DNA of 64,000 nt from Kudoa neothunni (GCA_964304625.1 OZ199840.1:4949200-5013199); one strand, 5' to 3'; shown: positions 10,906 to 61,721, counted from the first letter of the stretch. The notes: generated by a model from the letters alone, not told the origin. Program-made: numbers and translations.

Positions 10906-11757
10906 TACACTGCAATCACGCAACGCGCACACTCGAAATTTTGCTTTGTAAATAAGGAATTGGAAGGGGCGGCGGCACAGTGCCAATTATTGTTTCCGTC
11001 GGCTCCAACTGTTTTCCCTCATATAACATTAACTGGTGCTGAAATAATACCTATAAGTTGAATATGACATAAATGCACCATTATTTTATAGGCTGTGGCT
11101 ATTGTAAAAAATAAATTTAATCTTAAAGTTTGACGTACGCCTGCGCAAGACTCATTTACTCCTACGAACTACAGGAATGGATCCGTCGTACGTAATCCCC
11201 TCGGGGATGAGGAAATTGTATGTAATTTTTTGCGCGAGCGCACAAAAAATATTAAAACTTAAATATTAATGAAAAGACGATTTTTTTGCTTAAAATTACG
11301 ATTTAAAAATGAATAAACATCTGGAATAGAATCAGACATTAACTTACATTTATTTGAACCATGATGTTTAATTTTCAAAGTCGCACTCGCTAAAAAACAA
11401 TCTTCGGAAGTCTTTTGAGGTCAATTTCCTGGTATTTTCGATTTTTATCGACTAGTTTTTCAGGGAAACAATGTGAAATATGACAATCAATCCCGTTAAA
11501 TCTTTCACGTAATTATTCGTAGGCTATTAGCGAATGATCGTAAAATGTAAGCCACTGTTTAATAGCTAATTTATTGTTTATAATAATGATAATAATTTGA
11601 GATATTTTTATTTCAATTTTCTATAAACAATAATCTAATACATAACCGAAAATAACTTTAAAGATACACTTATACTCTCAATGAATCCATTGAAAGGACG
11701 AAACTAAAATAGTTTTAAAGGAAACCGCACAAGTTCTCTATCAACCATCAACCTCTC

Positions 11758-15129: not shown

Positions 15130-18125
15130 ATTATTTGAGCATAGAGAAAAACGTTTAAATACTATGTATAAAAGTTTTAATGATGGATTCGTTGCAAATT
15201 CCAAAATGCGCCGAAAATTATTTCCAGAAAAATTTATAAACTAAAAAACAATGTATACAGTCCACTATATAATCATATGAATAGATTTATTAATTAAAAA
15301 AGTAAAAGTACGGCCTAGTATAAAATTTTTCGATTAACGAGTTCATGCGCACAAAATTAGAAGAGAGTACGAAAATATGCATTAACTCAAATAATTCACA
15401 TAATTGGCATCAAAATTTTCCAATAAATCTTGAAAACAAACTTTTATAGTTCAAAATATATAAACATTATCTCGTTTCATGATAAATTCTAATCTATAAA
15501 TGATATAAGTACAAAAATTAAGCAGCGTAATGTTTAATAAGTAAATAAATTAATTTTTAGAACATTTTCACAATTGTTATAAATTTGAAAAAGCACTAAA
15601 AGTAGGCTCACGAAAAGGAACAACCTAAAACCACTCAAAGAAAAAACTATTTGTTATTATCGATAACAGTTGGAACTCGAAAAAATATGACAAACGAAAC
15701 AATAATTATATCGGTCGACTAAACTATTAGTTGGGTACAGGGAATGGACGAAAATGATCTTTGTCAAATTCTCTTAATCTAATTTTGTCATGTTTTTTGG
15801 CGAATCTGAACAGAGAATAAATTAAAAAATAAGAGGGAAATGGATAGTTTTACTCATCAAGTTTCATAAATCCGAGACTATCACATCCACCAGATTTGAC
15901 AATCTAATTTTAATAAACAGTAGATTAATAAGAACAGAAACGCAATCTAAATTACATCTCCATTAAATATCACTCTTACATAATAGTTGTTATCCTAAAC
16001 AATAATCAAAAATGATAAAAAACAAAAATCACATTGGAATCAATGTAGAGTTCAAAAGCGATATATGATGAAAGTGGAGGCCATTTTTCGTTGAAACCAC
16101 CCATAGCAGTTAACAATGTGAGAATGGTAGTATCATGACAGGAGGTTAGCCATAATTTAAGGTAATTTTTATCGAAGCCATCAGTTTGACTGTGATGCTT
16201 AACTGCATTTTCCATATGATTAATGATATCATCGACAACTTTCCCAAACAACACTTGGGTTAATTCGGGCCTATCATAAAATGAACCGTGGTCGTTTCAA
16301 TCCGGTTAATCATTGTATTTTTATATTACGAATCGCTAGCAACAGCATATTTTTCAGCATGTGCAGCACATTTTTCAACTAGATAGTAGATTTCTTCGTA
16401 TTCCTGGGGGATACTGAAGCCATTGTTCTATTAGCAATATGTAAAATGTCTTCCACATTAAACAAACAACTTTCATAGACGTTAAACTATCCCACAAAGC
16501 TATCGGTTGTGGGATATCGGATGAGTTATTGAAGAGTTGTGTAAGTTTCTCTCTCAAAGTATCACAAACTCTATGCGAATATTGCGCCGAATACGCATGG
16601 CTCATCCATTGATCAACTTTCTCACAAAATTGACTGTTTGGAAAATTGTAATCAACTTCGTTTGGTCTGGTATGGATAACAGCCATATTTTCTATGCAAC
16701 AAAAATCAGTACAAAAATGAACTGGAAAGGTAGAAATCACTGCAAACCAATTTCTACACTAACCCTACCTTTATTGATACTCTCGCCAAAAAAACCCTTT
16801 AACACAGCTTGTATAGAGTCAAACGTTCTATCCATATTAGTGGAGTATGCACTATATTGGCACAGATGTAATTTATGGATCAGAATTGACCGATATATTA
16901 CCCAACTACATCAGAACAGTATGCACTATCTAATAAATTGAGTTGATTCACATAACGCTCTTTCAATATTTGGCCTAGATTGTGGGAAAGTTGTTGGCCT
17001 TTTCGAGTCAATTGGCCGGTAGCACATCCACCCTGTGAACAAATGAAAATTGATGTTCATTTAACATTCATTCATAATTACTGGCAATTTCACAGATTTG
17101 TATATACCATCAAAGTATGATGGCGGACGTCCCTCACTTCCATCGTACTGATTAATCACTCTGTAAGGAAGATACTCCTGAGTGGTATCCACCTCACACA
17201 TCTCCTTATCCCACAATACATCTGGAAAATGTTTTAGTTTAGCTAAGGGAGTTCTTGTTCCATGTCTGAAATAGACTGTCGAAAATATAAGCTTTTTGTT
17301 GCTATCCATCGGGGGGTTGGCGAGGGTCTCACAAAGAGATGACGAGTGTAAATAATCTAATCCGAGCTGTGAATTAATATACGGTGTAGTTAGGGGGAAA
17401 TTTTTGAGAGTTAAAAAAGCGGCTGATCCAACTGCAATCAGCCTTCCACAAAATTTCATATTCAATTTTAAACTACGGTGAAAAACTGGTACTAATGCTA
17501 TTAGAGAGTTGTTGTGTGTATATCCACGTGATAGTAAATCTGCTGATTTTCTAAAAAGATTTACAAGTGTCAGTTATATTTTAAAATAAAAATTTGTTCC
17601 ATTAGTTCAGTGGAGTAAATAAAATTATGGATAAACTGTATTAATATTGGTATTAAATTTAATGAGTGCTTTTGAATAATATTTATAAGGATTATCGAAG
17701 TAGAAAAGCGATTATTTGTGAGTACTTAGTTTTACGATAAGTTGTCGGTTGTACCCGAGATTTTTTTATTTGGTATACGTTGAAAGATATTAGAACAAAT
17801 ATGAATTTTCCAAGAAAATGATTATTGGCTTGGTAAATTTTAAGCCTAACAATCATGCACGCTTGCGCGATGAGAATTTTTAATCCCGACAAATCTTAAT
17901 TATAAGCTGTACACAGATTTAATTTGTCAGAATCTGTTATATCCAATCATTTCTGAACTGAGAAAAGTGAAGAAACATTTAAGAAATAATTAAATATAAC
18001 GATAACTAATGACACCTGTATATTGTTTACGATGTCAAAAATCACTTTATTTCCTACAACCCTTATTGTAATATAACGCGCAACCGCTCATTGAGTGAGT
18101 ACGAAATTATTTCGTTTACAGTAAC
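15130..18125. repeat. Segmental duplication unit A1 (ACP6 locus), direct repeat of about 23598-26300
   Basis: Long identical tracts including non-coding flanks, e.g. tgtatacagtccactatataatcatatg at about 15252 and about 23633. Confidence 0.9.
15727..17459 (-). CDS. ACP6: Lysophosphatidic acid phosphatase type 6-like histidine acid phosphatase, copy 1 (intact, 9 exons)
   Basis: RHGTRTP catalytic motif, GGCATGQLTRKG, YSTNMDRTFDS, SCHDTTILTLL and KWPPLSSYIAFELY follow the ACP6 motif order; all introns GT-AG and frame-consistent; N-terminal leader MKFCGRLIAVGSAAFL. Confidence 0.85.
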
Positions 18126-23597: not shown

Positions 23598-26300
23598 ATT
23601 ATTGGAGCACACAGAAAAACGCTTAAATATGATGTATACAGTCCACTATATAATCATATGAATAGATTTATTAATTAAAAAAGTAAAAGTACGGCCTAGT
23701 ATAAAATTTTTCGATTAACGAGTTCATGCGCACAAAATTAGAAGAGAGTACGAAAATATGCATTAACTCAAATAATTCACATAATTGGCATCAAAATTTT
23801 CCAATAAATCTTGAAAACAAACTTTTATAGTTCAAAATATATAAACATTATCTCGTTTCATGATAAATTCTAATCTATAAATGATATAAGTACAAAAATT
23901 AAGCAGCGTAATGTTTAATAAGTAAATAAATTAATTTTTAGAACATTTTCACAATTGTTATAAATTTGAAAAAGCACTAAAAGTAGGCTCACGAAAAGGA
24001 ACAACCTAAAACCACTCAAAGAAAAAACTATTTGTTATTATCGATAACAGTTGGAACTCGAAAAAATATGACAAACGAAACAATAATTATATCGGTCGAC
24101 TAAACTATTAGTTGGGTACAGGGAATGGACGAAAATGATCTTTGTCAAATTCTCTTAATCTAATTTTGTCATGTTTTTTGGCGAATCTGAACAGAGAATA
24201 AATTAAAAAATAAGAGGGAAATGGATAGTTTTACTCATCAAGTTTCATAAATCCGAGACTATCACATCCACCAGATTTGACAATCTAATTTTAATAAACA
24301 GTAGATTAATAAGAACAGAAACTCAATCTAAATTACATCTCCATTAAATATCACTCTTACATAATAGTTTTTATCCTAAACAATAATCAAAAATGATAAA
24401 AAACAAAAATCACATTGGAATCAATGTAGAGTTCAAAAGCGATATATGATGAAAGTGGAGGCCATTTTTCGTTGAAACCACCCATAGCAGTTAACAATGT
24501 GAGAATGGTAGTATCATGACAGGAGGTTAGCCATAATTTAAGGTAATTTTTATCGAAGCTATTACTTTGAGTGTGACGCTTAGCTGCATTTTCCATATGA
24601 TTAATGATATCATCGAAAACTTTCCCAAACAACACTTTGGTCATTTCGGGCCTAACACAAAAACGAACAGTAATTGTTTCAATTCAGTTAATCATTTTTA
24701 TTTTCTTTACGAATCGCTAGTAACAGCATATTTTTCAGCATGTGCAGCACATTTTTCAACTAGATCATAGATTTCTTCGTATTCCTGGGGGATACTGATG
24801 CCATTGTTCTATAAGCAGAATGCAAAATGTCTTCCACACTAAAAAAACAACCTTCATAGACGCTAAACTATCCCACAAGGCTATCGGTTGTGGGATATCG
24901 GATGAGTTATTGAAGAGTTGTGTAAGTTTCTCTCTCAAAGTATCACAAACTCTATGCGAATATTGCATCGAATATGCATAGCTCACCCATTGATCAACAT
25001 TCTCACGAAATTGACTGTTTAGAAGATTGTAATCAACTTCGTTTGGTCTGGTATGGATAACAGCCATATTTTCTATGCAACAAAAATTCGTACAAAAATG
25101 AACTGGAAATGTAGAAACCACTGCAAACCAATGTCTACACTAACCCTACCTTTATTGATACTCTCGCCAAAAAAACCCTTTAACACAGCTTGTATAGAGT
25201 CAAACGTTCTATCCATATTAGTGGAGTATGCACTATATTGGCACAGATGTAATTTATGGATCAGAATTGACCGATATATTACCCAACTACATCAGAACAG
25301 TATGCACTATCTAATAAATTGAGTTGATTCACATAACGCTCTTTCAATATTTGGCCTAGATTGTGGGAAAGTTGTTGGCCTTTTCGAGTCAATTGGCCGG
25401 TAGCACATCCACCCTGTGAACAAATGAAAATTGATGTTCATTTAACATTCCTTCATAATTACTGGCAATTTTATAGATTTGTGCATACCATCAAAGTATG
25501 ATGACGGACGTCCCTCACTTCCATCGCACTGATTAATCACTCTATAAGGAAGATACTCCTGAGTGGTATCCACCTCACATATCTCCTTATCCCACAATAC
25601 ATCTGGAAAATATTTTAGTTTAGCTAAGGGAGTTCTTGTTCCATGTCTGAAATAGACTGTCGAAAATATAAGTTTTTTGTCGCTATCCATCTGGGGGTTG
25701 GCGGGGGTCTCACAGAAAGATGACGAGTGTAAATAATTTAATCCGAGCTGTTAATTAATATACGGTGTAGTTAGGGGGAAATTTTTGGGAGTTAAAAAAG
25801 CGGCTGATCCAACTGCAATCAGCCTTCCACAAAATTTCATATTCAATTTTAAACTACGGTGAAAAACTGGTACTAATGCTATTAGAGAGTTGTTGTGTGT
25901 ATATCCACGTGATAGTAAATCTGCTGATTTTCTAAAAAGATTTACAAGTGTCAGTTATATTTTAAAATAAAAATTTGTTCCATTAGTTCAATGGAATAAA
26001 TAAAATTATGGATAAACTGTATTAATATTGGTATTAAATTTAATGAGTGCTTTTGAATATAATTTAAAGGATTCTTAATTATACGCTGTATACAGATTTA
26101 ATTTGTCAGAATCTGTTATATCTAATCATCTCTGACTGAAAAGTGTGAATAAGCATATAAGAAATAATGAAATATAACGATAATTAATGGTACCTGTATA
26201 TTGTTTACGATGTCAAAAATCACTTTATTTCCTAAAACCCTTATTGTAATGTTACGCGCAACCGCTCATTTGAGTGAGTTCGAAATGTTTTCGTCTATAG
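23598..26300. repeat. Segmental duplication unit A2 (ACP6 locus)
   Basis: Direct repeat of about 15130-18125; lacks two insertions present in A1 (about 15168-15253 and about 17694-17893). Confidence 0.9.
24108..25840 (-). pseudogene. ACP6: ACP6-like copy 2 with premature TAA in the leader; otherwise open (possible leaderless isoform from ATG 25690)
   Basis: TCA(Ser) in copy 1 is TAA at 25751-25753; downstream exons, splice sites, RHG and HD motifs are intact. Confidence 0.7.
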
Positions 26301-28259: not shown

Positions 28260-29821
28260 GACCATTTGGAGGAAACCCGTATAAATTGTGGTTGGAACCT
28301 ACCCTGGACCTACTAATTATTGTTTGAACATGTGAAAAATATTTCTGACTGTTTTACGGTATTTTTTACACAGGATATCTGCAATGAAGTTATAAAAAAT
28401 ACAAATATTTTTGGAAAATAATGTTTCAAAGAAAACTGGAAGGACTTGGATTATGTTGAATTTCTAGGGTATTTGGAAACACTCATCTTAATGACTATTC
28501 ACAAAGAAAGAGGTGAGCTTTTATCTGAGCTCTTCAGCTTGAGTGAAGACAGGGAAATCTACCGGAAACTTTTCTCTCATCAGTGATTCCAACATATATC
28601 AAGGTGCCTCCATTTCGATGATCTTAGGTACCATAGAATCAAGGATTGACGATAAGTTTGGTTTGATTCGTGAAATTGAGACAACCTGGGCTAACATTTT
28701 GTCATTTTGTTTTGTTCCTAATGAGGATATCCCAGCGGATGAACAACTAGTTGCATTTAAAGGGGGAGTTTTATTTCGGCAATATATGCCCTTAAAACCA
28801 GCAAAGTACGGATTAAAGTTTTTCGTTTTAGCTGATCCTAAAGATAAGTATATCCTGAATGTTCTACCCTATCTTGGAAAGAACGCAAATGGACTAACTC
28901 GAAACTCAAGTGTTGTGCTAGAGCTAATTACCCCTCTTTTTAATTCAGGTAGGAATATTGTTGCGGACAATTTTTTCTTCAGTTGACTTGGCATCCAAAC
29001 TACTCGAAAAAAACTAGCCTATCTAGGTACCATGTGCCACAATAAAATAGATATTCCTCCATGTGTTCTGCCGTCGAAAAAAAGAACATTGTACAGCTCG
29101 ACATTTATGATTTAAAAAAATGCCTACCTCCTATGTGAATAAAAATGGAAAATCTGTGATTCTCTTATCCACAGGATCTACCAGTGATGCTATATCGGAT
29201 GAATCTTTAAGAACAAACCAGAGATTATACCATGTTACAATAAGACAAAAGGTGACGTTGATACAATAGACAGGATGCTATCCTCACATTCAGTTAGAAG
29301 ATTATGCAGGAGTTGGCCAATGGTGTTATTTTTTAACATGATAGATCTATCATTGATTAATGCTTTTGCGATATACAAAAACGTGTTCGACGCTTAAGAC
29401 TTGCAAAGGAGAAAATTCTTAAAGTATCTTTCAGAAGCATTACACACCACGCTTTTGGAGAGGAACTTAAACGTTAAGAAAATTGTAAAAAGGCCTCATC
29501 TAATAGTGAATGAAAGTTTAGCAACTACATCTGAGAATACTATCAGATTGAAATGTGAATTTTATCCTCGGCAGCATGATAAAAAACCTCATTGAAATAT
29601 GCAAGTTGCAACAGTTTTTACTGCCGCCTTCATCCATCTAAAAAATGTTTAAACTCTTATACATATAGGATCATAGTTGATAATTTCAATATTTTTTATT
29701 TGCTTAAATGCGAATTTTTGTATTTAGTCTAATTTTCTCACTCGAAATGCTTTAAAAAAATCTGGGGTCTTTTTTACTCCAAAGATCGTTCGAGGTAGTT
29801 TTTTTGATGATTGTTAGGGGG
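28260..29821 (+). mobile_element. piggyBac transposase pseudogene with right TIR
   Basis: PADEQLVAFKG..FRQYMPLKPAKYGLKFFVLAD, GRNIVADNFF and YNKTKGDVDTIDRM (DDD triad regions), CRD relic; ends TTAGGGGG|TTAA at 29822-29825. Left boundary approximate. Confidence 0.9.
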
Positions 29822-39427: not shown

Positions 39428-40718
39428 CTAAAATCCATAAAAATCATCATCATTTTGCACCCGAAATAATTCAGGCAAGCGAAATTTTTCATGCGAAGAA
39501 TTTTGTGGGTTATTCATTGTTGATGGGGATGATTTCGTGGCAAATATTTCATTGCAAAATGTTTCTAACTCCAGTTTTGGGTTCGCGAATAAATCTCGGT
39601 GAAATTGGCTGGTTTCCATGGGCATACTATAGAAACTGTCGCCCTCAATAATTCTTCCAACAATATCTTCGATACCTAAAAAAGCATTAATCAATCATGA
39701 CAAAACATAATAAATACATACATACATACATACTTTTATGAGTATGTGGATTAGTAGATTGTTCAGCGAGAGAAGCAGACGTAAAATGTGAGTCGGATGC
39801 TGTACCCGCTAAAACAAACTCGTTATTGTTGTCCAAATCCAAAACCAAAGCATTTGTGGGTTTTTCGCGCCGTTCCTCATCTGCTTGATCCAATTCCTGT
39901 TGTTCTTCCAAAAACTCTCTCGCATCCTGAGACAACCATCTGTTTGTAGGCGTAAAATAGTCATTTTGATCATCAATAACTTTGTTGGTTGTGGTTTTGC
40001 TGTATGATAAATCGAGATGAGATTTAATAGCTACACAAAAAATGTACAATTCTCGATCTTGATTAATTAGAATATTTTTGTGGTCGATTGCTTGTTGAAA
40101 AGACTTTTATAAATATTAGTTGGTTTGAATGCTAGATAGTTTACTACTCGTTTATCATCAGCCGAAGTCAAGCGTTGCATAAGAGCCACACTTTTCTGTG
40201 TGTTGGCATTTAGGATTGCTCGCTCTCCAGTAGTGCACACAATCTCCCCACAGGTGAAACAACTACCCGAGCCTTCCTGTGCACACACTATTCTCCCACA
40301 ATTGGAACAGTTGTTTACCAACTGGTGACGTTGCGCCAAACATGTGCATTCCATTCTTACACCCTGTAAATCTAAAGGATGGTTTTTCTGAGGGGGGTCA
40401 TTTACAATTTCAGGGGGTTTTTGATGTGCGCGATTTTTAGTCTTATTTTTTTCTAATAGAGTTTCATCACTAGCCCGCTTAGACTCGTCTAATCGCTCCA
40501 ATCTATCTAAAAGTTTTCTATGATAGTCATTATTCAAATCAAGCAGATTTGATAGTTCTGAATGGGCTCGATGTGTTGGCAATTTTTGAAGGTAACTGCA
40601 TGTTTTAATATACTTATCTGCATGAAAAATTATAATAAAACTTTATATAAGGTTTGCATTGATCAGAACCAATTATAGATGAAAGTTGTTCATACAACAC
40701 TTCCCACAACTGATCCAT
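39428..40718 (-). CDS. TRIP4: Activating signal cointegrator 1 (TRIP4/ASC-1, Rqt4-like) with C2HC5 zinc finger, no ASCH domain
   Basis: CTCLAQRHQLVNNCSNCGRIVCAQEGSGSCFTCG; QQAIDHKNIL..DR; KVIDDQNDYF; RWLS; ends FRVQNDDDFYGF*. Alternative in-frame ATG at 40733. Confidence 0.9.
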
Positions 40719-47232: not shown

Positions 47233-48457
47233 GCTTAGGAGGATGATAATACATCATTGCTCAAATGTGAAAATTAATTAATTTAGAAAATATATATATA
47301 AAAACTATAAGAATTCTTTTATTTCGGATGAGGGCAGAATCTAAAAAAAGAAGTTTAAATTCAAGAGTATAATATTTATCTCAAATGATAACTCAACTCA
47401 CCAACATGGGCTAAATCGTATTTTTCGTCAGTTATGTTGAGTCGAAAATAATTTTGTTAAATTTAAGAATGATCAGGAAGTAAATACTGAGAAAGATTTT
47501 GTTTGATTAACTAAAAAAATTGTTGGCCTCTATTATTTATTTAAAGACTAAACAAATTATCATAAATATCAGAATTAAAGAATATTTCAAGTTATCTCAT
47601 TCTGTCAACTTAATGTGTACCTTGTAGTAATCCCACAATGAACAGAGGCGGAGCCCCGATCTAACCCATTACATTATTGGGCGGAAATCCTGAAACCATT
47701 AGGACTATCATTGCTATCGCTACTACTGCAATTACTAATACAATTACTATTACAAAAGTTCTACATATATTATTATTAGCAGTGATAGTTTCTTCGCGCA
47801 AATACAACATACCTTTTCTGCAACCTTTTTGCACGATGTTTAGTCAAATATTTCAAATAAGGTGTTATAGTTTTACGTTAATTTTTGAAAGGTTTTGTAT
47901 AGTTTTAATATAGGAACTCTATTATACCATACTGAGTTATGGATTTCAGCTATGTAACCTAACGCAAATTACAGCATTTAAATGAAAGAACCGTTTTTCT
48001 GATTGTTTAAGAGAAAAAAATAAATATTGATTAACTTTGCCATTTATATTTTCAAAATGTTTTCATAGTAAATATCTTTATATTATGATTAATATCTATT
48101 TGAATGTATTAGAAAAATAAAGACGAAATTTTAGTAATAGCATGCGATGAAACGTTTTATTTTACCATTATTTACACGATTTCGTAATAAGTTTAATATA
48201 AAATCAATATGAACAAAAATTGGTAAAAAAATTCATAACAATTCATCATACATTACCAGGTAAATTTAGAGTTTCGTGTTTAAATAAAGTTAAATCCACT
48301 ATTATGATATTCATATTTTGTATCTAATGATATTAAATTTTTAAAATAACGACTCATTGTAGTAAATACTTTAATAATAATGTGCTGATCAGAAAATTAC
48401 GATCTATTAAGAATTGAGGTATTAAATCAATTGTCATTTAAATAATCTATATACCCG

Positions 48458-51400
48458 ATGAAAGTATCGGAAATAATATCGCATCCACATATTCAACTCT
48501 ATTTGTTTTTACCCATTACTGTTAAATATGGTTATATGTAGATTTTTTTGTCAACTCTATTGTATAAAATTTATTTTATTACAGTTAATCAATGTTTAAT
48601 AGTTATACAACTTGCATTATTTTGTATGATAGAGAATGCACCGGCGACTGGCACTCAACCAGCATCTGGTCCATTAGCTACGCTGAAATACCAAATTGAG
48701 TATGGCGGTACTACTGGAGCAGATACAGTAAAACATATACTTGGTGGATCAAATTATGGTTCTGGAAAGTGTCGTATATTGAAATCAAACGATGCAGCAA
48801 ACACTTTCGGTTCAGGTTCTGCAGCTGTATTTGAAGAAATTTCACAATGCCCTGGATTTGATAATGCTAATAGTAACAACCATTGCATAATCGATTGCAA
48901 TAACCAAGATAGCAAAGTCACGTACGATAAACTCTCTCCAAGAGTAAAATACATATATGTATATCATGGAACTGAAACCGATGCTGTTAAAGAAGATTCT
49001 CATAAAAGAGGTGGTAAAGTGTTTGGTTTGGCAACACGTAAGAGAAACAACTATGAATTGATAGATTTATCCGTTGAATTTAGCATTGTTAGTAAATCCT
49101 CAAGTATCGATCTCTATGGAAACCCTAAAATTGAAGATCGTACATAAAACTTGCCCACAAGTCGATTGCCCTGTTTACTACAAAGACGCCAAATTTGCGG
49201 AAGGTTCAAAGGGAAACACGTGTGTGACAAATACCAACGCAAATACTCTAGATTTTAATCTATTGATTCCTCATTATGAGATGAGATGTGAAAAATATCC
49301 AAGTTTCTTTTATTACATGCCAAATGCATATATGAAGAAAAACATTGCTATTTACAAACCTCAATATTATGTAACAAAGAAGACAGGGGACGATAAGCAA
49401 GTTGTTGTTAAATTCACTGATCTAACATTATCGTCAGAGATCTGCGTATTCAATATTAAAGACGCTGAAAGTGTAGCATCTAGTGTTGTGTTTGAATCTA
49501 GGTGTGGAAATACTGCGGAAAAGTGTTACGCACCTTGTAAAAATCTCGAACTTACGGTGACTGAATTAAAAGCTTTCTACCAAATCTTAATTCAAACCAG
49601 ATATCACGACCTTTCTATAACTACTACTGATAATCCAGATGGATTTCTTCAGAAAAAGTTTGGTACTTATTTTACATCATATAGTTTTATATTCAATTTT
49701 ATAGCCATTGCGGAAACTAATGGCGATCTATTGTCCGATTTCAAAAAGGGTGGTGTAAAGCTAAATGCTGCCATATTTAAACCAACGACAGGAGCTTCAT
49801 CCTTTACTTGTACTATAAAACATTATCTTGCTGATACAATTAAGCCAACTTCATCTATTGAAACTATTTGCGAGACGAGTACTAGGGCAGCTGGTGCTAA
49901 TACTTGTAAAACGGATTGCACAAAAGTAGAAATTGAGCAACTATCTCCAGGAAAATCGTACATAATTGAAATTGAATTTGGATTGGCTGAAAATAAAAAT
50001 AATGAACAAATACTTATAAGGACAGGTAATAACTGAAAGTTAAATATCAATAACTAAACATTTTCAAAGATAATGATGATAATAAAGAGTTCCAAACAAC
50101 TGACCCTACCAAAACAGAATCAACCGCTACACTAACAGCTATTGGAGGCACAGCTGAAGGCGAAAAGATAAATGAGCCAAATTGTGAGTATTACATAAGT
50201 CCAGCCGGGAAAAATACATTTTACACTGCTAAATGTACTGAAACTAATCCTTGTAGAGGAAGGTGTAGAGATCCAATAACTATTATTGACCTTGAACCAA
50301 ACACTCTTTACGACGTTAGAGTCGTTGCTGATAAGGATTATAAGGAACATATATATACAAATGTTAAAACGAGTATATTTCTCCATACACTAATTTATTT
50401 CATTCAATCTAGATTTGGCAACGTTGACAATAAATCCAAAATATACGGAGCACGGATTGCGGTTGAATGCACAATTGTCCAAAAAAGTTCCGGAAGCTAT
50501 TTGTCATTATACAATCCAAATTAAGAAGGCTGGCAGGTTCGAAGATGCTTACATCTGTACACCACCACAAACACCAGAAGTTGTCCCACAAGTTCCTGAG
50601 ACTCCACCAAGCACACAAACTGATTCCAATCCTATCCCGGGTCAAGAAATAACTAGTACCAACCAACTTTCTATTCTAAAATCAACAGATACTGAATCGG
50701 AAATTGCAGGAACTGAAACTAACATGGAAACTAACACTGATTCAACTGTTGACTCTACCACCACAACTACTACAACTGCGAGCCCAATCAATTCAAACAC
50801 ATGTTCCTCATTTCCTTTATGCAGTTCTATTGAATTCAACAACTATGATGCAAACGAAGAATATAAAGTGATTATTACCGCAGTGGGAAAATCTAACTCG
50901 AAAGAAATCACGTTAGCAGCCAGTAAAACTATTATTGTTATTATATAAAAATTTAAAATCATCTTAAATAGCTGCTCCAAAAGGAAACCCTACAGAAAAT
51001 GCCAAAACAATATACGTGCAAATTACAAGAGATGGTGAATCATTCACGGTTGAGAATACTCTTCCATCAACTCATAGAGAAAATTCCAAGTGTAAATGGG
51101 AATTACGTAATTCGAGTGTTAAATCGATGGCGATTATTAAAAAATGCATGAGTCGCTATGATCCTGGATGTAAAAGGTTCCCTCCATGTAAATCATTCAC
51201 TATCCGTGGATTAGTTGATGGCAACAACTATCACTTGACTGTCTACAGTTCTACCGATACAACAGTTTACGGGACGGCTACTATTGAGCAAGGTGAGACA
51301 TTATTTATACGACAATAATTTAAAATGTAAATTTTAGGAGCTAAGAGCAGTTCAAGGTTTTTTAATTAATATTTTTAAAATTATTTAATTTTTTATTTAG

Positions 51401-51539
51401 TTCTAAAACCATGGTCATGTATTAATTTATTATTTGCTTATAATTGAATTAATATTATTCTAGAATAATTGTGGTAGTGGTTATTGTTGTTTTGATTTCA
51501 GTTTCTGTTGGATTGGTGGTTTTCAAGAAGAAAAATTAA
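48458..51539 (+). CDS. Uncharacterised type-I membrane protein with about seven Cys-rich FN3-like modules, copy 1 (874 aa, 10 exons)
   Basis: Exons 48458-48530, 48633-49037, 49084-49662, 49705-50025, 50070-50372, 50413-50922, 50972-51292, 51338-51356, 51401-51418, 51464-51539 sum to 2625 nt in one frame; signal-like MKVSEIISHPHIQLYLFLPITVKY; FN3-like LSPGKSY, LEPNTLYDVRVVA, GLVDGNNYHLTV; TM IIIVVVVIVVLISVSVGLVVF then KKKN*. Confidence 0.8.
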
Positions 51540-52699
51540 TCATCAACGTGAAGGAATTATTTTCCAATGACATAACTAGAAACATTTAGAGAATTTAGTT
51601 ATCTATGTGATATTTATGAAAATTTATATATATATATATATATTAATCATTCAAATTTATAATTTCTATAACAAATAAAAAATATTTTCTATCTAAAATT
51701 TATTAAGGTTATATATATATAACTTGATTGAGGTATAGAATTACTTACATACAAATATAAGATTAGGAGTGTCGATTAATTTTTTTTATAATTATAAAAT
51801 ACATGCGCCAAAATATTTTGATGTTACATTTAACTGCTTTTGCAAATTAAACCCAAATAACGGTACTGAAAATAGTGTTAAATAAGAATATCAGACAAAT
51901 TAAACAACAAAACATGATTAACATGCTTCCATTGTTTGTTTAAAAGATGAGCAAGATATCTTTTAAAATGGTACCTTGGATTTTCGATACTCTGTAATAA
52001 TTGCAAATTCAAGACTTTAGGAACTGTTATTTGGGTATTAGTATTTATTTCCTTTTTTTTGTTGTAACGTTTGACTATTTAAAAATTCATGCTGAATGGA
52101 AATATCAATAAATAAATTTATTATAGGATTACTTAATTCTAGAATTTGTTTCTAAAATCTCTCAAAATTATAAGTTTCAACCACAGTCGGATCTCGATAT
52201 AGTGTGATTAGATACAGCGTAGTTTTAAATTTGGACGTCGATTTTATTAATTTTAGAGTTATTTAAATTCACCTTCAATTTTACGATTACACATAATGAG
52301 GAAAAATTTTAATTTGTTTAAACCTAACGATCCCCTATAACGAGATTCTTTCGTACTGCGTGACTCCTTGAGGTTAGTGACTGGTTACGGCGAGGTTTCG
52401 GATGAGCAAAATACAATTCAATATTGACGTAAAATGTGTGACGATAAATATTTTATAATTTTATAAGGAAATAACAAGGAAAAGAGAAAAAAATTAAAAT
52501 TAAAACTTTGCAGTATGTTTTTCTGCGTATAAATATATAAAGATAGCAGAAGGAAAATTCAGCCACGCATGCCCATTAGTAGAAATGACATTGTTTATTT
52601 GTGTCGTAATTTAATCATAAAAACATAGAAATAATAACTCAAAAAATTATCTAATCTTATAACTTCCAAGAATATTGTTTTGCAACGATTCGAAGACAA

Positions 52700-54008
52700 T
52701 TTAGTCCATAATATGAATTATAATTGAGACAAATGGTTTTGATTTGATCCAATTTTCGTTGATCTTTTGAGGAAAAATTATGTTGGAAATTTGTCAAATT
52801 ACATTCAATATCATTTTGGACATTACTCATCACGGTTTTTAGTTTATCGAAGAATGTTTATAATTCCGGATGACTGTTCAAATTTACCATAAAAATGCCG
52901 ATTGAATACCTTAGAAGAATTAGAGGTAAGCAGTATGTTATTCAAGATCCGATCATAGGCATTCCAATTCTTTGCTTGGTGCATTGTTTCTTCCAAATTT
53001 TTTTACTAAATATTGAAAGAAGGAAACTAAATTAATATCTGTAAATTTCAAGGAATGTTTCAATAATTTTTTATATTCTATTTTGATAAATTTTGTAGGA
53101 ACAAACGCTAATGATGTTAGCGATTTCACAAAAAGATGATTCTCAACATTCTTCCAGTATTTATTTTTCAATCCAAGCTCCTGTATTTTTCTCCAGACGC
53201 ACTGGCCAACGTGAAAATGACAAAAATAAATTTCATTTTCGTTGCTATTTTTAAAGAAATAAAATCTGCTAACTCAAAATCTATGATAATGTACTTCGGA
53301 AAACGCATCACATATTTTTAGAGAAGATCACTGAATACTTTAAAATAGTCATCTTTTTTTGTTTTGGATGAATATACACGAAAGGGTAAACCTTGGAAGA
53401 CACTTTTCCATTAATTGCATATAACTGTAAAAATTGTTTAGGACAAACCTTAAATGTTCCATCAGCAATAAGCGTCTCTGCGTTCTTTATGTGAGATAAA
53501 TTGCCCTCTGTTGCAAGCGTAACCATCCTATTGTTAGTCTCAACTCCAGTATCAAGAATGCAAACATTTCCGCTTCCAAGAGTACTTACCTGGAGTTCTT
53601 CAAGATTTCTTGTGGTTTCAATTATTATTTAATTTATTTTTCTTATAATCCGGATATTTTTATATACGTAGTTTTTATTTAAAATCGGGAGCTCGCACAA
53701 TTTAGTTGTACTAGTTGCGACAGAATATATTTGAAGCATTGAGTATGCAGTGTTTTCAGTTAACTCTTTTATTTTTCATTATCACTTTGAACATGCTTAT
53801 GGTTGTCTGTCGATATAACATTTTCAATTTTATCCAGAGGAGTTGTTTTAAGTTTTGTGGAGGAAAACCTATTTTTGCATCTCCAAGATTGGTATTCTTT
53901 TGTAGAGTGGTGTTTTAAATAAAAATAATTCTTATAAAATACCATTTCTGTATTTTGCTGTGTTAAAAGTAATTTAAAATTGAAATCGATAACGTCACCA
54001 CCTGCCAT
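52700..54008 (-). mobile_element. MULE/Mutator transposase pseudogene (FLYWCH-like N-terminus)
   Basis: YFYLKHHSTKEYQSWRC; LIADGTFKVCPKQFLQLYAING; FVKSLTSLAFVP; several frameshifts. Confidence 0.8.
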
Positions 54009-56156
54009 TCAAAAATATAGCCTTTTACATGCGTGTCCGAGTTTTCCCCTTGTCAAGGTCTCTCGTCGTTTAATGCTAAATTTGAAAATGGATCTAAATT
54101 AGATAATTGCAATTAATAGCAACTAAAAAAAGGTTTTTGCAGAGAAAATTTGAATGATTTGATGCTTAAATGGATGATTGGACATTCAAGGCAAGACATT
54201 TATGTAAATCAGTTTTATATTAACTAATTATGGAAGTAGTCGAATTTACGTCGGGTGAATGTGATTTCGATAATTTATATATAAGTATAGGTTGGGTTTG
54301 TGGTATTAAGAAAATTTTATTGACTCCGATAAAAAAGGATCCACGAAAACGCTAACAGCTTTGATATTTGAAATGTTTAAAAATCCACACTGTTTCAAAG
54401 GAATAAATAAACATCCAGTTGACTATCAAATTCAAAATAACTCATGGGCAATTAAAGGGGGTTTCAGAAATTAATGAAACGATTAGAACTTAAAATATAA
54501 TTAACGGTGGTGTTTCCTCACAGAATCCAGTTTCCAGTAATAACTTAGATTCCTATATGGGGATAGAGCGTAATATGTTCTATATCGAAAAAAATGATGT
54601 TCATGTATTAAACATCTAAAAAAATTTATTTTATTTTTAGGAAGAGATACACCATGAACATCAAATCATAAGAGTATAGTTTCCAATATTTGAATTATTC
54701 GTAATAGAGAACAAGTCACAAATGACTGGTCATTGTGTGCAAACGAAGTGTGTTTGAAGATAAAATATTAAATTTATTTATCATTATTTTACTCAAAAAT
54801 AATCGTAATTGCGAAAAAGTTTTTACTTTATGTTGTAATACGGTAAAATCAATAATATTTATTTAACGATTTTTCCACATAAAATATCGGTAACAAATAA
54901 TTTTGAGATGCATAATTAATATGCATTGACCCATTTAAATTACTACAACAAAGGAAGTTTTATAACGGAAGAAAGAAGTTTTTGTCGTAATTATCAAGAC
55001 TCTCACTGTTCTAATTTAATAAAAATAAAAACTATTTATTTTAAACAAAAAAAATTAGGATATGAGTTTCCAAATAAATTTTGAACAGAATTCTTGTATC
55101 ATGAAGAGTTGGCAAAATGATTTTAGCGTATGTTAAGCAGAAAATACAATCATACCATGTTATTTAATTTTTCATACAATATAATAAAGTAAGCACGTCT
55201 TTTTTCTGTATGTTGAATTATTTTAATCTATTATTTTTCAATAATCTTTATGATTGAATAAAATTATTTATTATAAATGTTTTTTAAATACAGATATTTT
55301 AAATATTAAATGAAAATAGATATATTTTTCTACAAAAATTGAGTATAAGATTGATTAAAAATGATAAAATACATTACAACAGTTAATCAGAGTTAAACGT
55401 ATAATTGGATATATCACTCATAATGAGAATTATTAAAATTTATAAATAATCAATTATCAATTTATCCTGTAAAACTAAGGTAACGAATGTACTAGATTTA
55501 ACCAATAAAAGTTTATAAAATACTTGATAATCTACCTACTATTGATAATATAATTTTCGTTCTCATTTTAACTATGGAACTACTTATAGACAAATAATAT
55601 CAATTTAATCAAATTTTAGAAATGTGTAGTATTACAGAGTTTTTAACTGTTTATAATAATAAATCCCATCATCTATAAAAACCCTGATAAAAGTATTTCT
55701 AATATGAAATAATATGATCATATTTTAATTTTTAAGATAAATTTGTTAGTTAATTAATAAATTTACATATTACATACGTATGCATATCTAAAAATAGAAT
55801 TGCTCGTTTATATAGCGTAGTTTTGCGGGACCGGCGAAACACCACGCTATATCCAGGTCCGATTGTATATGTAATTCGCATGAAAAATGTCCCTTAGTTT
55901 TAATATTTATGAAAAATCAAACAGAGACTACTTACAATAAAGTTTTAACTATTGTTACAGGAAATAATGTAGTTTTTCCGGAATATGTAATGATTGATTT
56001 GGGAATCCAATCCACTTATGCGTTTAAAAACATCAAGAAAAAACCTACATAAGATTTTACTTACTTCACTTTGACAAATATATTTGGAGACGAATTTTAA
56101 TAGAAGGATTTTCAGAAGTATTTTCTAATAATATTGGCCTTTATATGTATATGAAA

Positions 56157-56862
56157 TTAGCGCAAAAGCCCCGCTTCGCATGGGCTTCCTGGCCTGGCCA
56201 CGCGGACTCAAGCCTTGAGTAGGGCAAGGCTATTTGAAGTTCAAAGTAAATTCAGAGTATTTAGATAAATAGTACAAAGATTACCCAATATTAACTGATG
56301 GTTTATTTAACTCATTGGGTGCATGAACCTTATTTAATATTTTTAAAAGCTAATAAACACTACTGAGCGTTTGAATTTCCTATTTTAAACTCCTAAAATA
56401 TCGATTTTCTCTTTGTTGTTTGCAGTAATCTCTAAATCATACAATATGAATCCGACTAATCTTGTTAAACATCAACAAATAAATTTCATATTAATGCTTG
56501 GATACATAACCTAATATTACCTTCCTTATTTGAACTAATTCATTTACTAAATCACTTTTCAATAATTTTAAAATAAAATAAACACTATTAGATATTTAAA
56601 ATTAACTTTTAAAACTTTAACGAAATGATCTATATGTTTGCATATATCCTAAAATCATACCACTCATACCACGTGAAAATGTTTTTAGTCATTTTTCAGG
56701 ATGCAAACCTTTTATAATTTTTTACGTATTTTTCTGTGCTAAAATAAAATTTTATCCTCCCATACATGTGCTCAAATAGAGCGATATATCTCTCTATAAT
56801 GAATGAAAAATTCGTACACACTGACACACACGGATTACCGGTTTGCTTTATTATATAGTAGA
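56157..56862 (-). mobile_element. Non-autonomous Helitron, 706 bp
   Basis: On minus strand A|TCTACTATATAATAAAGCAAACC ... AAGCCCATGCGAAGCGGGGCTTTTGCGCTAA|T: TC start, 3' hairpin, CTRR end, A|T insertion, no TSD. Confidence 0.85.
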
Positions 56863-57352
56863 TTACGGAAATTACAACTTTTGGACGAAAAGCCGTTTTT
56901 ATAGTTCATTAAGGTACAAATATAAGTGTTGATTAATTTCATTATTTCTATTTGTAAATATCATTATATTATGATTAATGTCTAATTGAGTGAACTAGAG
57001 AAAATAAAGATTAATACGATAAAATACCATACGAAATAAAAACAACAAAATAGTGAAATTCTTGACATTATTCCGAAATTAAATTTGATAAGATTAATTA
57101 AAATAAAAAATGTTTGCTACTGTAAATAACACATCATACATTACCGGATAAATTTAGAGGTTTCATAGTTACCATAATGACAATTAAATCCTTTCTTGAG
57201 GTTTCTATATTTTGGTTCCAGCAATTTCCAAATTTTCGAATTAACAATTAAGTTTTAGCCTTTTATCTAAATAAAGATAAACTAATCAAAAATTTACGAT
57301 CTATTAAGAATTGAGGTATTAGATCAATTGTCTTCTAAATAATCTGTATCCG

Positions 57353-60300
57353 ATGAAAGTATCGGAAATAACATTGCATCCATATATTCAATTCTATTTG
57401 TTTTTACTCATTATTATTACATATGGTTATGATTAGATCTTTGTGTCAACACTTTTGTACATAAATTTATTTCATTACAGTTTATTAATATTTATTAGTC
57501 ATACAAATTACACTATTTTGTTTGATAGAGAATGCACCAGCGGCTGTGACTCCATCTGCATCTGGTCCATTAGCTACGCTGAAATACCAAAATGAGTATG
57601 ACGGTACTACTGGGGCAGATACAGTAAAATATATACTTGGTGGATCAAATTATGGTTCTGGAAAGTGTCGTATATTGAGATCAAATGAAGCAACAACCTT
57701 ACTCAATGGAAGTACAGCAGCTGTATTTGAAGAAATTCCACAATGCCCTGGATATGATACTGCAGAGAATGATGGAAAATGTATAATTGACTGTATTAAA
57801 AATGATAGTAAAGTTTCATACAACAAACTCTCTCCAAGAACAAAATACATATATGTATATTCTGGAACTGGCACCAGTGCTGTTAAAAACGATGAACATA
57901 AAAAAGGTGGAAAAGTGTTTGGTTTGGCAATACGTAAGAAAAATAGTAATGAATTGATAAATTGATCTATTGTATTTAGCGTTGCTGGTGAATCCTCAAG
58001 TAAAGAACTCTATCGACTCCCAAAAATTGAAGATCGGATATAAAACATGCACACCAGTTGCTTGCCCTGTATACTACAAAGACGCCGAGTTCTCAGTCGG
58101 TACCAAAGGAAGTTCATGTGAAGATAATGACAAAGCAAATACCGTAGATTTTGATAAATTAGTCCCTCATTATGAGATGAGATGTGAAAAATATCCAAGT
58201 TTCTTTTATTATATGCCAAATGCATATATGAAGGAAAACATCGCAATTTACAAACCTCAATATTACGTAACAAAGAAGACAGGGGCCGATAAGCAAGTTG
58301 TTGTTAAATTCACTGATTTAGCACTATCGTCTGAAATTTGCGTTTTCAGCATTAAAGACGCTGAAAGTACAACAGCTAACTCCCTGTATGAATCGAAATG
58401 TGGAAATACTGCGGAAAAGTGTTACGCACCTTGTAAAAATCTCGAACTTACGGTGACCGAAGCGAAAGATTTATACCAAGTCTTAATTCAAACCAGACAT
58501 CACCGCCTTTCTATAACTACTACTGATAATCCAGATGGATTTCTTCAGAAAAAGTTTGGTACTTATTCTACATAATATAGTTGTATATTCAATGTTATAG
58601 CCATTACGGGTCCTGAAGACAATTTATTGTCCGATTTCAAAAAGGATGGTGTCAAATTAGATGTTGCCCTATTTATATCAACATCAGGGGCTTCAACAAA
58701 TACCTGCACGATAAAACATTATCACGCTGATACAATTAAGCCAACTTCGTCTTCTCCAACGAACTGCAAGAATAATAATGAGGAAGGTGGAGCTGTAGCT
58801 TGTACGACAGATTGCACGAAAGTAGAAATTGCACAACTATCTCCAGGAAAATCGTACATAATTGAAATTGAATATGGACCATCAGGTTCAACTAAATTTA
58901 TAGAACAAATCCTTATAAGGACGGGTAATAACTAAATATTAAATATCAATGACTAAAATTTTCAAAAGAGAAAAATGATGGAAAAAATTTCCAAGAAACT
59001 GCTCCTACTCAAACAGAATCAACAACTACACTAACAGCTATAGGCGGCGAAAAAGAAGGCAATCCGAAAAATGAGCCAAATTGTGAGTATTCCATTAGTC
59101 TAACCGGGAAAAATACATATTACACCGCTAAATGTACTGAAACTAATCCTTGCAGAGGGAGGTGTAGAAATCCAATAACTATTATTGATCTTGAACCAAA
59201 CACTCTTTACGACGTTAGAGTCGTTGCTGATAAGGATTATAAGGAACATATATACACAAATATTAAAACGAGTATATTTCTCTTTACACTAATTTATTTA
59301 ATTCGATCTAGATTTGGCAACATTGAAAATAAATCCAAAATATACGGAGCACGGATTGCGGTTGAATGCACAATTGTCCAAGAAAGTTCCAGAAGCTATT
59401 TGTCATTATACAATCCAAATTAAGAAGGCTGACAGTTTCGAAGATGCTTACATCTGTACACCACCACAAACACCAGAAGTTGTCCCACAAGTTCCTGAGA
59501 CTCCACCAACCACACAAACTGATTCCAATTCCAACCCGGAACAAGAAATACCTGGTACCAGCCAACTTTCTATTCTAAAATCAACAGGTACTGAATCGGA
59601 AATTGCAAGAGATGAAACTAACATGGAAACTAACACTGATTCAACTGTTGACTCTACCACCACAACTACTACAATTGCGAGCCCAATCAATTCAAACACA
59701 TGTTCCTCATTTCCTTTATGCAGTTCTATTGAATTCAACAATTATGATGCAAACGAAGAATATAAAGTGATTATTACCGCAGTGGGAAAATCTAACTCGA
59801 AAGAAATCACGTTAGCAGCCAGTAAAACTATTATTGTTATTATATAAAAATTTAAAATCATTTTAAATAGCTGCTCCAAAAGGAAACCCTACAGAAAATG
59901 CCAAAACAATATACGTGCAAATTACAAGAGATGGTGAATCATTCACGGTTGAGAATACTCTTCCATCAACTCTTAGAGAAAATTCCAAGTGTAAATGGGA
60001 ATTACGTAATTCGAGTGTTAAATCGATGGCGATTATTAAAAAATGCATGAGTCGCTATGATCCTGGATGTAAAAGGTTCCCCCCATGTAAATCATTCACT
60101 ATCCGTGGATTAGTTGATGGTAACAACTATCACTTGACTGTCTACAGTTCTACCGATACAACAGTTTACGGGACGGCTACTATTGAGCAAGGTGAGACAT
60201 TATTTATACGACAATAATTTAAAATGTAAATTTTAGGAGCTAAGAGCAGTTCAAGGTTTTTTAATTAATATTTTTAAAATAAATAAATGTTTTATTTAGT

Positions 60301-60438
60301 TCTAAAACCATGGTCATGTATTAATTTATTATTTTCTTATAGTTGAATTGATATTATTTTAGAATAATTGTGGTAGTGGTTATTGTTGTTTTGATTTCAG
60401 TTTCTGTTGGATTAGTGGTTTTCAAGAAGAAAAATTAA
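57353..60438 (+). CDS. Uncharacterised type-I membrane protein with Cys-rich FN3-like modules, copy 2 (intact paralog)
   Basis: Same 10-exon structure as 48458-51539; signal-like MKVSEITLHPYIQFYLFLLIIITY; splice sites GT-AG; identical TM and KKKN* tail. Confidence 0.8.
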
Positions 60439-61721
60439 TCTTCAACGTTCAGGAATTATTTTCTAATGACCTAACTAGAAACATTTAGAGAATTTAGTTA
60501 CCTATGTGATATTTCTGAAAATTTTTTTTGGTATATATTAATCATTCAAATTTATAATTTCTATAGCAAAACAATTTTTGTTATCTAAAATCTCTTAAAA
60601 TTATAGATTTCAGCCACAATGGGACTGGATACAATGTGAATAGATTTAGCGTGATTTTAAATTTTGACGCCGATTTTATTAAAGTTAGAATCGTTTACGT
60701 TTTTACTCAATTTTATTCTATTATAAGAAAAAACATATAAACTAAAAATTTTGGAAATTTTTTCAAACCTAATAACGTTCCCCTATAATGAGGTTCCTTC
60801 GTGTATCGCGGCTTCTTGAGTTTGGTGACTGTTTATCCTAAGGTTTCGGATTACGAAATAACAGTTCAGTACAGACAATGCAATTTCGTGTATTCTTTCG
60901 TTCTCGTGTTTTCATGAATTAAATACCATGCCTAAATTTTGGCACGAAACACGAACGAAATTTATTTGGCTGATGTGGACCTTAGACACTTCTAATATTT
61001 TGTTAATCCCAATAAAGTAAGTCCTAGACATTGTGTGACTTGATACAACATAATTAATGATTTTTTCATTGTTTTCTAACATAAAAAGTTCAACAAATTC
61101 TGTTAATTAGCCTTTAACAAGCCGCAAAATGCTATATTTAATTTTTGGTTTAATCAAATTCAAAATTATAGAAATCGATGGCCTCGCTATCGCGTGGCTT
61201 TTTTGATAAAATTATCCGATTAGTTCTATATGTTTCTTATCAAAAAAATAATGTTAGGAATATCTCAGAGATGCATAGGAGAAAAAAATCCGAATTATCC
61301 AATAATTCGAATAGATTAGAGCAATATCGGGTGTCAATATGGCGATAATGAAGCATGTTAGCCTACCAAGTATTGACTAGATTTTAGTTTTGGAGAAATA
61401 AGAATAGATCATTCCCCTCTCTCTGAATGATATTATCAAAAAAAGCTACTTGATGTGTACAAGCATTTCGATTGATTGAATACTAATTTCTCATGGAAAA
61501 TACATCCAGATTGAGAGCGTGAGTTGTATAATTGGATTGTTAGCTTACGAACAAAAAAGAAGTGTCAAAATTTAAAATTAAAGAAAATCAATTCCTGAGC
61601 AAACATGATTAAAATGAAAAAAATTTCCTTTTAGTATTATGTGGTTTTGTTAATTCAAAAGCGGTTGAGTTTAAATAACAAACTCAATGAACATGCAGCT
61701 GGCGCTGATATTGTCAGTTAA

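Follow-up and report, generated by a model that had tools for sequence, protein, structure and literature searches.

Here, a large family of cysteine-stapled membrane proteins is described in the myxozoan fish parasite Kudoa neothunni, from two tandem genes in a 64,000-nt stretch of chromosome 3 (the window; GCA_964304625.1 OZ199840.1, C3:4949200-5013199, with positions counted from its first letter). Gene A (48458-51539) and gene B (57353-60438) are head-to-tail paralogs on the plus strand, each encoding a signal-like N-terminus, seven modules, a transmembrane helix and the four-residue tail KKKN. The modules are FN3 derivatives with putative disulfides, and no named family is matched at curated thresholds. 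With a probability of about 0.6, the proteins are Cys-stapled FN3 membrane proteins that follow the secretory route, act as a binding coat or adhesin on the surface and have been diversified by duplication and gene conversion.

The window DNA is AT-rich and eukaryotic, and the two genes emerge from an end-to-end alignment of 48300-51700 with 57195-60600. Exon models were drawn from reading frames, GT/AG borders and the A/B alignment, and all splicing is accordingly predicted. Each gene has ten exons separated by introns of 40-72 nt; the six large exons are all of phase 1-1, and the open reading frame (ORF) runs to 884-890 codons in A and 885 codons in B. These open, phase-consistent models bear out an earlier sequence-only reading of the window, which had proposed two intact ten-exon genes here. 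The frames of that reading hold, but its exon-2 acceptor (48585 in A, 57481 in B) leads to an in-frame TAA at codon 27 of B, and both genes stay open with an acceptor lying 18 nt further on (48603 in A, 57499 in B), which all copies have. A further candidate acceptor at 48633 was rejected because the hydrophobic stretch upstream of it is kept as coding sequence in close paralogs with three different 5' arrangements. The conserved ATG at 48528 was also rejected as the start of A or B, every splice option meeting a stop when the sequence was read by hand. The resulting features, with modules 1 to 7 abbreviated M1 to M7, are:

48428-48470, plus strand: upstream element of A, comprising CAATTG (48428-48433) and the inverted repeat CCGAT..ATCGG (48455-48470), which holds the ATG of A
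48458-48530, plus strand: A exon 1, ATG and 24 codons with a phase 1 end, donor GTTATA and an open frame, common to B only
48585 (or 48603)-49037, plus strand: A exon 2, predicted signal-peptide hydrophobic core (..VIQLALFCMIENA) and M1
49084-49662, plus strand: A exon 3, M2 (atypical, four Cys) and M3 (typical four Cys)
49705-50025, plus strand: A exon 4, M4 with the four-Cys pattern
50070-50372, plus strand: A exon 5, M5 with the predicted FN3 fold
50413-50922, plus strand: A exon 6, M6, whose Cys2 and Cys3 are separated by an 81-residue Ser/Thr/Pro-rich insert
50972-51292, plus strand: A exon 7, M7, adjoining the membrane and 98-100 % identical among the four copies A-D of the array
51338-51356, plus strand: A exon 8, 19-nt micro-exon
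51401-51418, plus strand: A exon 9, 18-nt micro-exon
51464-51539, plus strand: A exon 10, transmembrane helix, KKKN and stop
57353-57425, plus strand: B exon 1, 89 % identical to A exon 1
57499-57933, plus strand: B exon 2, predicted signal-peptide core and M1, open with acceptor 57499 and not with 57481
57980-58558, plus strand: B exon 3, M2 and M3, 84.8 % nucleotide identity to A, dN/dS (ratio of nonsynonymous to synonymous substitution rates) 0.33
58601-58924, plus strand: B exon 4, M4, 77 % nucleotide identity to A, dN/dS 0.48
58969-59271, plus strand: B exon 5, M5, 86.8 % nucleotide identity to A
59312-59821, plus strand: B exon 6, M6 with the Ser/Thr/Pro-rich insert, 95.9 % nucleotide identity to A
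59871-60191, plus strand: B exon 7, M7, 99.1 % nucleotide identity to A
60237-60255, plus strand: B exon 8, micro-exon, 100 % identical to A
60300-60317, plus strand: B exon 9, micro-exon, 100 % identical to A
60363-60438, plus strand: B exon 10, transmembrane helix, KKKN and stop

The modular plan is shared across the genome. Sixty paralogs were sampled from all three chromosomes and aligned exon by exon (54-62 sequences per alignment), and tblastn with the six large exons of A found the same six, in the same order, in almost all of them; no cross-match between different exons was detected by this search at E <= 1e-3. Exactly four Cys are conserved in each of M1, M4, M5, M6 and M7 and eight in exon 3, and the mean number of Cys per module is 4.0, so that additional Cys are practically absent. 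The conserved ones are invariant in M1 (62 paralogs), M5, M6 and M7 and near-invariant in M3 and M4. The spacings are C-x25-C-x11-C-x3-C in M1, C-x19-C-x6-C-x3-C in M3, C-x19-C-x11-C-x3-C in M4, C-x16-C-x5-C-x3-C in M5, C-x17-C-x81-C-x5-C in M6 and C-x17-C-x7-C-x5-C in M7. In M6, where C30, C48, C130 and C136 are invariant, the insert between Cys2 and Cys3 varies in both length and sequence between paralogs, and its 81 residues are 52 % Ser/Thr/Pro. M2, the first half of exon 3, has four Cys spaced differently from those of the other modules, together with a strongly conserved aromatic segment (P-H-Y-E-M-R-C...Y-P-S-F-F-Y). The 884 residues of A include 29 Cys (3.3 %), and the conserved ectodomain Cys of the family number 28. 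One observation bears on their pairing: M4 of five paralogs has lost both Cys1 and Cys4 while keeping Cys2 and Cys3, which suggests C1-C4 and C2-C3 disulfides.

The fourth Cys is followed by an L-x-P-x3-Y-x-V strand whose Leu and Tyr are invariant in M5, M7 and M1. This agrees with the hallmark of FN3 domains, a Leu in the E-F loop and a Tyr in the F strand (L-x-P-x-t-x-Y-x-v-x-V): M5 has invariant L74 and Y80 and M7 an invariant Y86, and L100, P102 and Y106 of M1 are invariant or nearly so. Profile-profile comparison (hhalign) links M4 to M5 with a probability of 70-88 % and M6 to M7 with 84 %, M4 to M6 with 27 % and M1 to M4 with 18 %; M3 has weak links to M6 and M7 (E 3e-3 to 8e-3), and no link from M2 to the other modules was detected by this method. 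The matches span the Cys-bearing part of both modules, and in the alignments inspected the Cys are in register. The paralog alignments therefore confirm three features that had been read from the window copies, namely the Cys spacings with the stretch of about 80 residues in module 6, the atypical module 2 and the FN3-like strand after Cys4.

Structure prediction covered M5, modelled from a 54-sequence alignment, and exon 3 (M2 and M3). The AlphaFold2 model of M5 is all-beta, with a predicted local distance difference test score (pLDDT) of 89 and a predicted template-modelling score (pTM) of 0.79. Foldseek matched it to almost nothing but FN3 domains in the PDB (E 2e-3 to 3e-2, template-modelling (TM) score up to 0.62, for FN3con), and in VIA-align the top 50 rows were all FN3, drawn from contactins, monobodies, fibronectin, tenascin, titin, DCC and neogenin, at Z 8.3-9.4 and root-mean-square deviations (rmsd) of 2.3-3.8 A over 81-92 of 100 residues. 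In the ESM Atlas, M5 reached TM scores of 0.61-0.69 to fn3 clusters, and its profile matched FN3 domains of titin (5.8e-8), NCAM2 (4e-5) and fibronectin (1.5e-4). M5 is thus predicted to be an FN3 fold, a seven-strand beta-sandwich, and its most variable stretch among paralogs is the loop between strands B and C. The exon 3 model (pLDDT 81.7) contains two beta-sandwich domains, the second FN3-like. As a whole it resembles two-FN3 tandems, mainly cytokine-receptor modules, neogenin and Tie2 (Foldseek E 1e-4, TM score 0.3-0.4); taken separately, M3 (exon-3 residues 91-192) aligns with single FN3 domains at a middling Z of 6.3-7.0 and M2 (residues 3-90) with Ig-like sandwiches at an equally middling 6.7-6.8.

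Sequence searches give a mixed picture of how the module relates to Pfam fn3. Pfam fn3 (PF00041) is matched at E <= 0.01 by 37 of 54 paralogous M5 modules (best 4.5e-6), and the M5 of the window copy scores 14.1 bits, below the gathering cut-off of 25. The other six modules gave no fn3 match: scans of M1-M4 and M7 returned nothing meaningful, and M6 was scanned as the single window copy. The M7 profile matched titin at 0.0015, PDB profile searches with M1 and M4 gave nothing meaningful, and M1 yielded no useful information in an ESM Atlas feature search (score 0.76). No other domain was found by Pfam in any exon. All database and fold searches were run exon by exon and not with the joined full-length protein, and within that scope no collinear match to a conserved receptor (RPTP, usherin, Dscam, contactin) and no phosphatase, laminin or Ig domain appeared. 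The proposal of a Cys-stapled FN3 derivative outside named families, and its prediction that modelling would return beta-sandwiches, are consequently upheld by the FN3-only fold matches of M5, its sub-threshold Pfam score in the window copy and the two AlphaFold2 models.

The nearest relatives in fold are the FN3 domains of animal adhesion proteins such as contactins, NCAM, titin and fibronectin (PF00041), with which M5 shares the seven-strand sandwich, the E-F loop Leu, the F-strand Tyr and phase 1-1 exons. Classical FN3 domains, however, lack the four invariant Cys (two putative disulfides) of the Kudoa modules, and the Kudoa proteins differ further in having no Ig or cytoplasmic domain and in being encoded by hundreds of genes in a 40-Mb genome. 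The class I cytokine-receptor module (gamma-c, gp130, leptin receptor) supplied the best Foldseek matches of exon 3 (E 1e-4), and the first domain of the cytokine-receptor homology module also carries four Cys. The likeness ends there: TM scores are 0.3-0.4, Z 6.3-7.0 and rmsd 6-10 A over both domains, the Cys spacing is different, the translation of A has no WSXWS, and there is no box1 or box2 in a tail of four residues.

At the C-terminus, 54 of 58 paralogs have a hydrophobic segment of 17-30 residues (mostly 20-21), a Lys-rich tail of 2-5 residues and a stop, this anchor segment lying 146-188 nt (mostly about 170) after exon 7. KKKN (14), KKKRD (12) and KKKK (5) are the commonest tails. The two micro-exons (19 and 18 nt) form conserved islands with conserved AG and GT borders in the 58 paralogs. 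The single transmembrane helix with a short Lys-rich tail, described from the window as KKKN, is therefore general among the sampled paralogs, and with a cytoplasmic part of four residues the absence of a signalling tail also stands. In family size, in being Cys-rich type I membrane proteins and in their nearly invariant, very short basic tail, the Kudoa proteins resemble the variant-specific surface proteins (VSPs) of Giardia. They differ in fold, in having no CXXC repeats (their close Cys spacings are C-x3-C and C-x5-C), in Cys content (3.3 % in A against more than 5-10 %) and in tail (KKKN or KKKRD against CRGKA). The definition of Giardia-type VSPs asks for five or six CXXC/CXC motifs or more, a Cys content above 5-10 % and a conserved CRGKA-type C-terminus, and VSP-like genes have been reported in Sphaerospora molnari (bioRxiv 10.64898/2026.02.11.705288).

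The tandem arrangement of A and B had been recognised correctly, but the array consists of four head-to-tail copies, A-D, and not of two. Copies C and D lie at C3:5018065-5026924, starting 4.9 and 10.6 kb beyond the window end and extending to 13.7 kb. Exons 2-10 of C are open and no start codon is found at the A/B position; D has frameshifts in exons 2-3 and is therefore a pseudogene in its 5' half, while its 3' half is identical to C. The copies are mosaic. Over 49519-50937, some 1.4 kb that includes introns, A and C do not differ at all, yet their identity falls to 80 % in exon 2 and 76 % in intron 1. C and D match without a difference over 50291-51310, again including introns, and in the 3' part of exon 3, C is nearer to B than to A. 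From exon 6 onwards A-D are 96-100 % identical, against 74-85 % in exon 2 and 74-91 % over the distal exons as a whole. Because the introns are identical too, this homogeneity is not due to selection on the protein, and the membrane-proximal exons and introns appear to have been homogenised by recent segmental gene conversion or unequal exchange. The interval between A and B holds short broken ORFs on the minus strand (52657-54008), with one weak FLYWCH zinc-finger match (E 0.006) and, in another ORF, a stretch 'DGTFKVCPKQF' that we take to recall MULE transposases; they look like a decayed transposon.

Comparison of A, B and C with one another gives dN/dS values of 0.5-0.8 for exon 2, 0.3-0.45 for exon 3 and 0.1-0.2 for exon 7. 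Family medians, from 77-242 pairs per exon, are 0.53 for exon 2 (M1), 0.27 for exon 3 (M2 and M3, the second lowest), 0.49 for exon 4 (M4), 0.31 for exon 5 (M5), 0.46 for exon 6 (M6) and 0.24 for exon 7 (M7, the lowest). As the ratio is nearly always below 1, the genes of the family are constrained coding sequences, and to judge from these medians the constraint is looser in M1, M4 and M6. Tandem arrays, single-pass proteins, Ig/FN3-type ectodomains and most variation in the distal domains are also features of Hydractinia Alr and arthropod/chelicerate Dscam. The analogy drawn earlier with Alr and with parasite variant antigens holds for organisation (tandem genes, distal variation) and is not one of homology; no Ig (V-set, I-set) domains or tail signalling motifs were detected in the Kudoa proteins.

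The family is large. A genome-wide count with an exon-3 profile, a check that the sequence-only reading had proposed, gave 150 scored matches out of 441 first-look exon-3 candidates, all at E <= 3.5e-66 and 146 of them without stops; exons 2 and 5 gave 258 and 498 first-look candidates. The family thus has at least 150 members and probably 250-440, distributed over all three chromosomes. By hand count, the first 0.46 Mb of C3 contains 24 of the 150 and C1:16.3-16.9 Mb another 16, with the rest in many smaller arrays, and about 15-20 % of sampled members have frameshifts or missing exons. Against 1.84 billion representative proteins the same profile found 19 matches, one of which (P0019) is a generic bacterial FN3 protein and was discarded as a family member. 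The 18 true relatives are unnamed singleton fragments from two SRA runs and several ENA metagenome assemblies; the contigs concerned (L063-L068: Logan SRR31175926 and SRR33849685, ENA ERZ795007 and ERZ28624939) keep the exon order, show 28-46 % protein identity to A and have a GC content of 17-39 %, and one shows partial synteny with C3:1.35-1.39 Mb. Their most likely source is therefore a set of related parasites, probably further myxozoans present unnoticed in fish or environmental data, and on the matches found the family is probably restricted to Kudoa-like myxozoans.

Full-text literature searches found no published description of the family, and the words fibronectin, surface, paralog and gene family are absent from the Kudoa neothunni genome paper (PMC12239612). 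That assembly, derived from yellowfin tuna data, comprises 40.2 Mb (N50 12.0 Mb) in three chromosomes and a circular mitochondrial genome, with a median intron of 49 bp, a genomic GC of 30.4 % and 5,316 proteins predicted from homology hints (PMC12239612). A (TAAACC)n telomere was reported at one chromosome end only (PMC12239612), and the array was found at exactly one place, C2:12039536-12040069, at the end of C2. A nematode origin, which the small genome, the three chromosomes and introns of roughly 45 nt had brought to mind, was discarded: a search for the SL1 leader was negative, and the assembly statistics agree with Kudoa neothunni.

The 5' ends of the genes are arranged in different ways. 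The hydrophobic stretch before E/K-N-A is kept as coding sequence in A-D and in the close paralogs L003-L011, reached by three arrangements: an unspliced start (L003, L004, L009, L011), an ATG with a 39-nt intron immediately after it (L006-L008, L010) and a 73-nt first exon, seen in A and B only. A, B and D have 80-100 % identity over the roughly 60 nt that precede the ATG. CAATTG lies about 25 nt upstream of the inverted repeat, and 35 of 64 family members carry this core in their upstream sequence; the counterpart of the repeat in C, D and L006-L010 is an almost perfect palindrome, CCGATACANGTATCGG, without ATG. A subfamily with the first exon M-K-I-A-G-F-L-Y-L-V-L-G (e.g. L021, L025, L036, L047) has a near-invariant block of about 60 nt ending at the ATG, in which CAATTG occurs twice at a distance of 19 nt, with TTCGG/CCGAA on either side of the first copy. 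The CAATTG and palindrome elements are candidate promoter elements, and the block of this subfamily has the look of a promoter common to its members.

Put together, these observations would fit the following scheme. The four Cys of each module would form two disulfides, C1-C4 and C2-C3, and an ectodomain with such disulfides would fold in the secretory pathway and face outside. Since there is no signalling tail, their function would be binding, with the proteins forming a coat or serving as adhesins on the surface of the parasite. Duplication and segmental gene conversion would supply diversity mainly in modules 1, 4 and 6, modules 2-3, 5 and 7 would be a constrained scaffold, and the Ser/Thr/Pro-rich insert within module 6 would lie close to the membrane. 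We infer the surface location from architecture only. Several points weigh against this scheme. Kudoa plasmodia grow inside muscle fibres, and a host-facing, disulfide-rich coat would there face host cytoplasm. No exon and almost no family pair has a dN/dS above 1, which gives no sign of diversifying selection. Fold modelling covered M5 and exon 3 only, and the FN3-like assignment of M1, M4, M6 and M7 draws on the common four-Cys register and profile links. A KKXX-type pattern for retrieval to the endoplasmic reticulum (ER) also fits 42 of 54 tails, with Lys at -3 and -4. The 5' end of A and B is uncertain, their ATG sitting in a regulatory-looking palindrome that is ATG-less in C, D and close paralogs. 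Finally, hardly any of the RNA reads from tuna could be mapped to the parasite (PMC12239612).

The main rival, which we regard as rather unlikely, is that the proteins mediate contacts between cells of the parasite itself (cell-in-cell stages, valve- or capsule-forming cells), or are a component of the spore surface, and do not form a host-facing coat. The architecture is that of animal FN3 adhesion molecules, the conserved aromatic segment of M2 points to one fixed partner, and all exons are under purifying selection, as such a role would have it. Several hundred paralogs, the fastest change in distal modules and segmental exchange nevertheless seem beyond what structural adhesion needs.

Antigenic variation, in which one or a few copies are expressed at once and variants arise when silent or defective copies, C and D for example, act as conversion donors, is more doubtful. 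It would make sense of the mosaic array, with its start-less C, the 5' pseudogene D and 3' halves identical to those of intact genes, of the large arrays near two scaffold ends and of the conserved upstream motif; but dN/dS is below 1 everywhere, gene conversion is common in tandem arrays without antigenic variation, and antibody pressure on an intramuscular Kudoa stage is uncertain. A conversion-driven variant surface coat in a cnidarian parasite, with broken copies as donors and the palindromic upstream element controlling copy choice, is accordingly put forward as speculation that we do not expect to be borne out.

Residence in the ER or early Golgi, through retention by a C-terminal di-lysine signal, would account for the Lys at -3 and -4 (KKKN, KKKRD, KKKK and others) and is very improbable: a tail of 2-5 residues directly after the helix fits a plain positive-inside stop-transfer signal, and ER residents that number hundreds, diversify and carry mucin-like stalks would have no precedent. 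That the copies are non-functional repeated DNA, unexpressed ORFs or transposon cargo, can be practically dismissed, since the transposon remnants between copies, the defects in roughly 15-20 % of sampled members and the silence of the published, protein-hint annotation are set against a dN/dS of 0.24-0.53 in hundreds of pairs, against 28 ectodomain Cys, splice sites and micro-exons kept across paralogs of 35-80 % identity, and against the same exon order on contigs from other sources.

Elsewhere in the window, six further features were noted, and Rfam gave no match within the window:

508-888, plus strand: C-terminal part of a protein kinase domain (E 1.6e-11)
5278-9861, minus strand: 1,527 codons in a single open frame, which contains a poly-Gln run and has no Pfam match
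9895-10986, minus strand: 363-codon frame with one weak TPR repeat, adjoining the 1,527-codon frame, with which it may form one large orphan gene
16375-16740 and 24765-25121, minus strand: two ORFs, closely similar and each about 120 codons long, 8.4 kb apart, a local duplication or repeated element; no Pfam match for the first
28543-28986, plus strand: piggyBac-type transposase fragment (Pfam DDE_Tnp_1_7, E 5.9e-20)
40067-40582, minus strand: C2HC5 zinc-finger protein (E 3.7e-8)

The host-facing molecules of myxozoans, economically important parasites of fish, are almost unknown. With 150 members or more, and perhaps above 400, the family would make up several per cent of the Kudoa neothunni gene set and be easy to miss. 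If the proteins are on the surface, as the reading of a binding coat or adhesin holds, they would be obvious candidates for adhesion, immune evasion, diagnostics and vaccine targets in Kudoa. Furthermore, the module would be a new, naturally disulfide-stapled version of the FN3 scaffold, should the disulfides form as proposed, and the mosaic four-copy array provides a concrete locus for asking whether segmental exchange creates variants.

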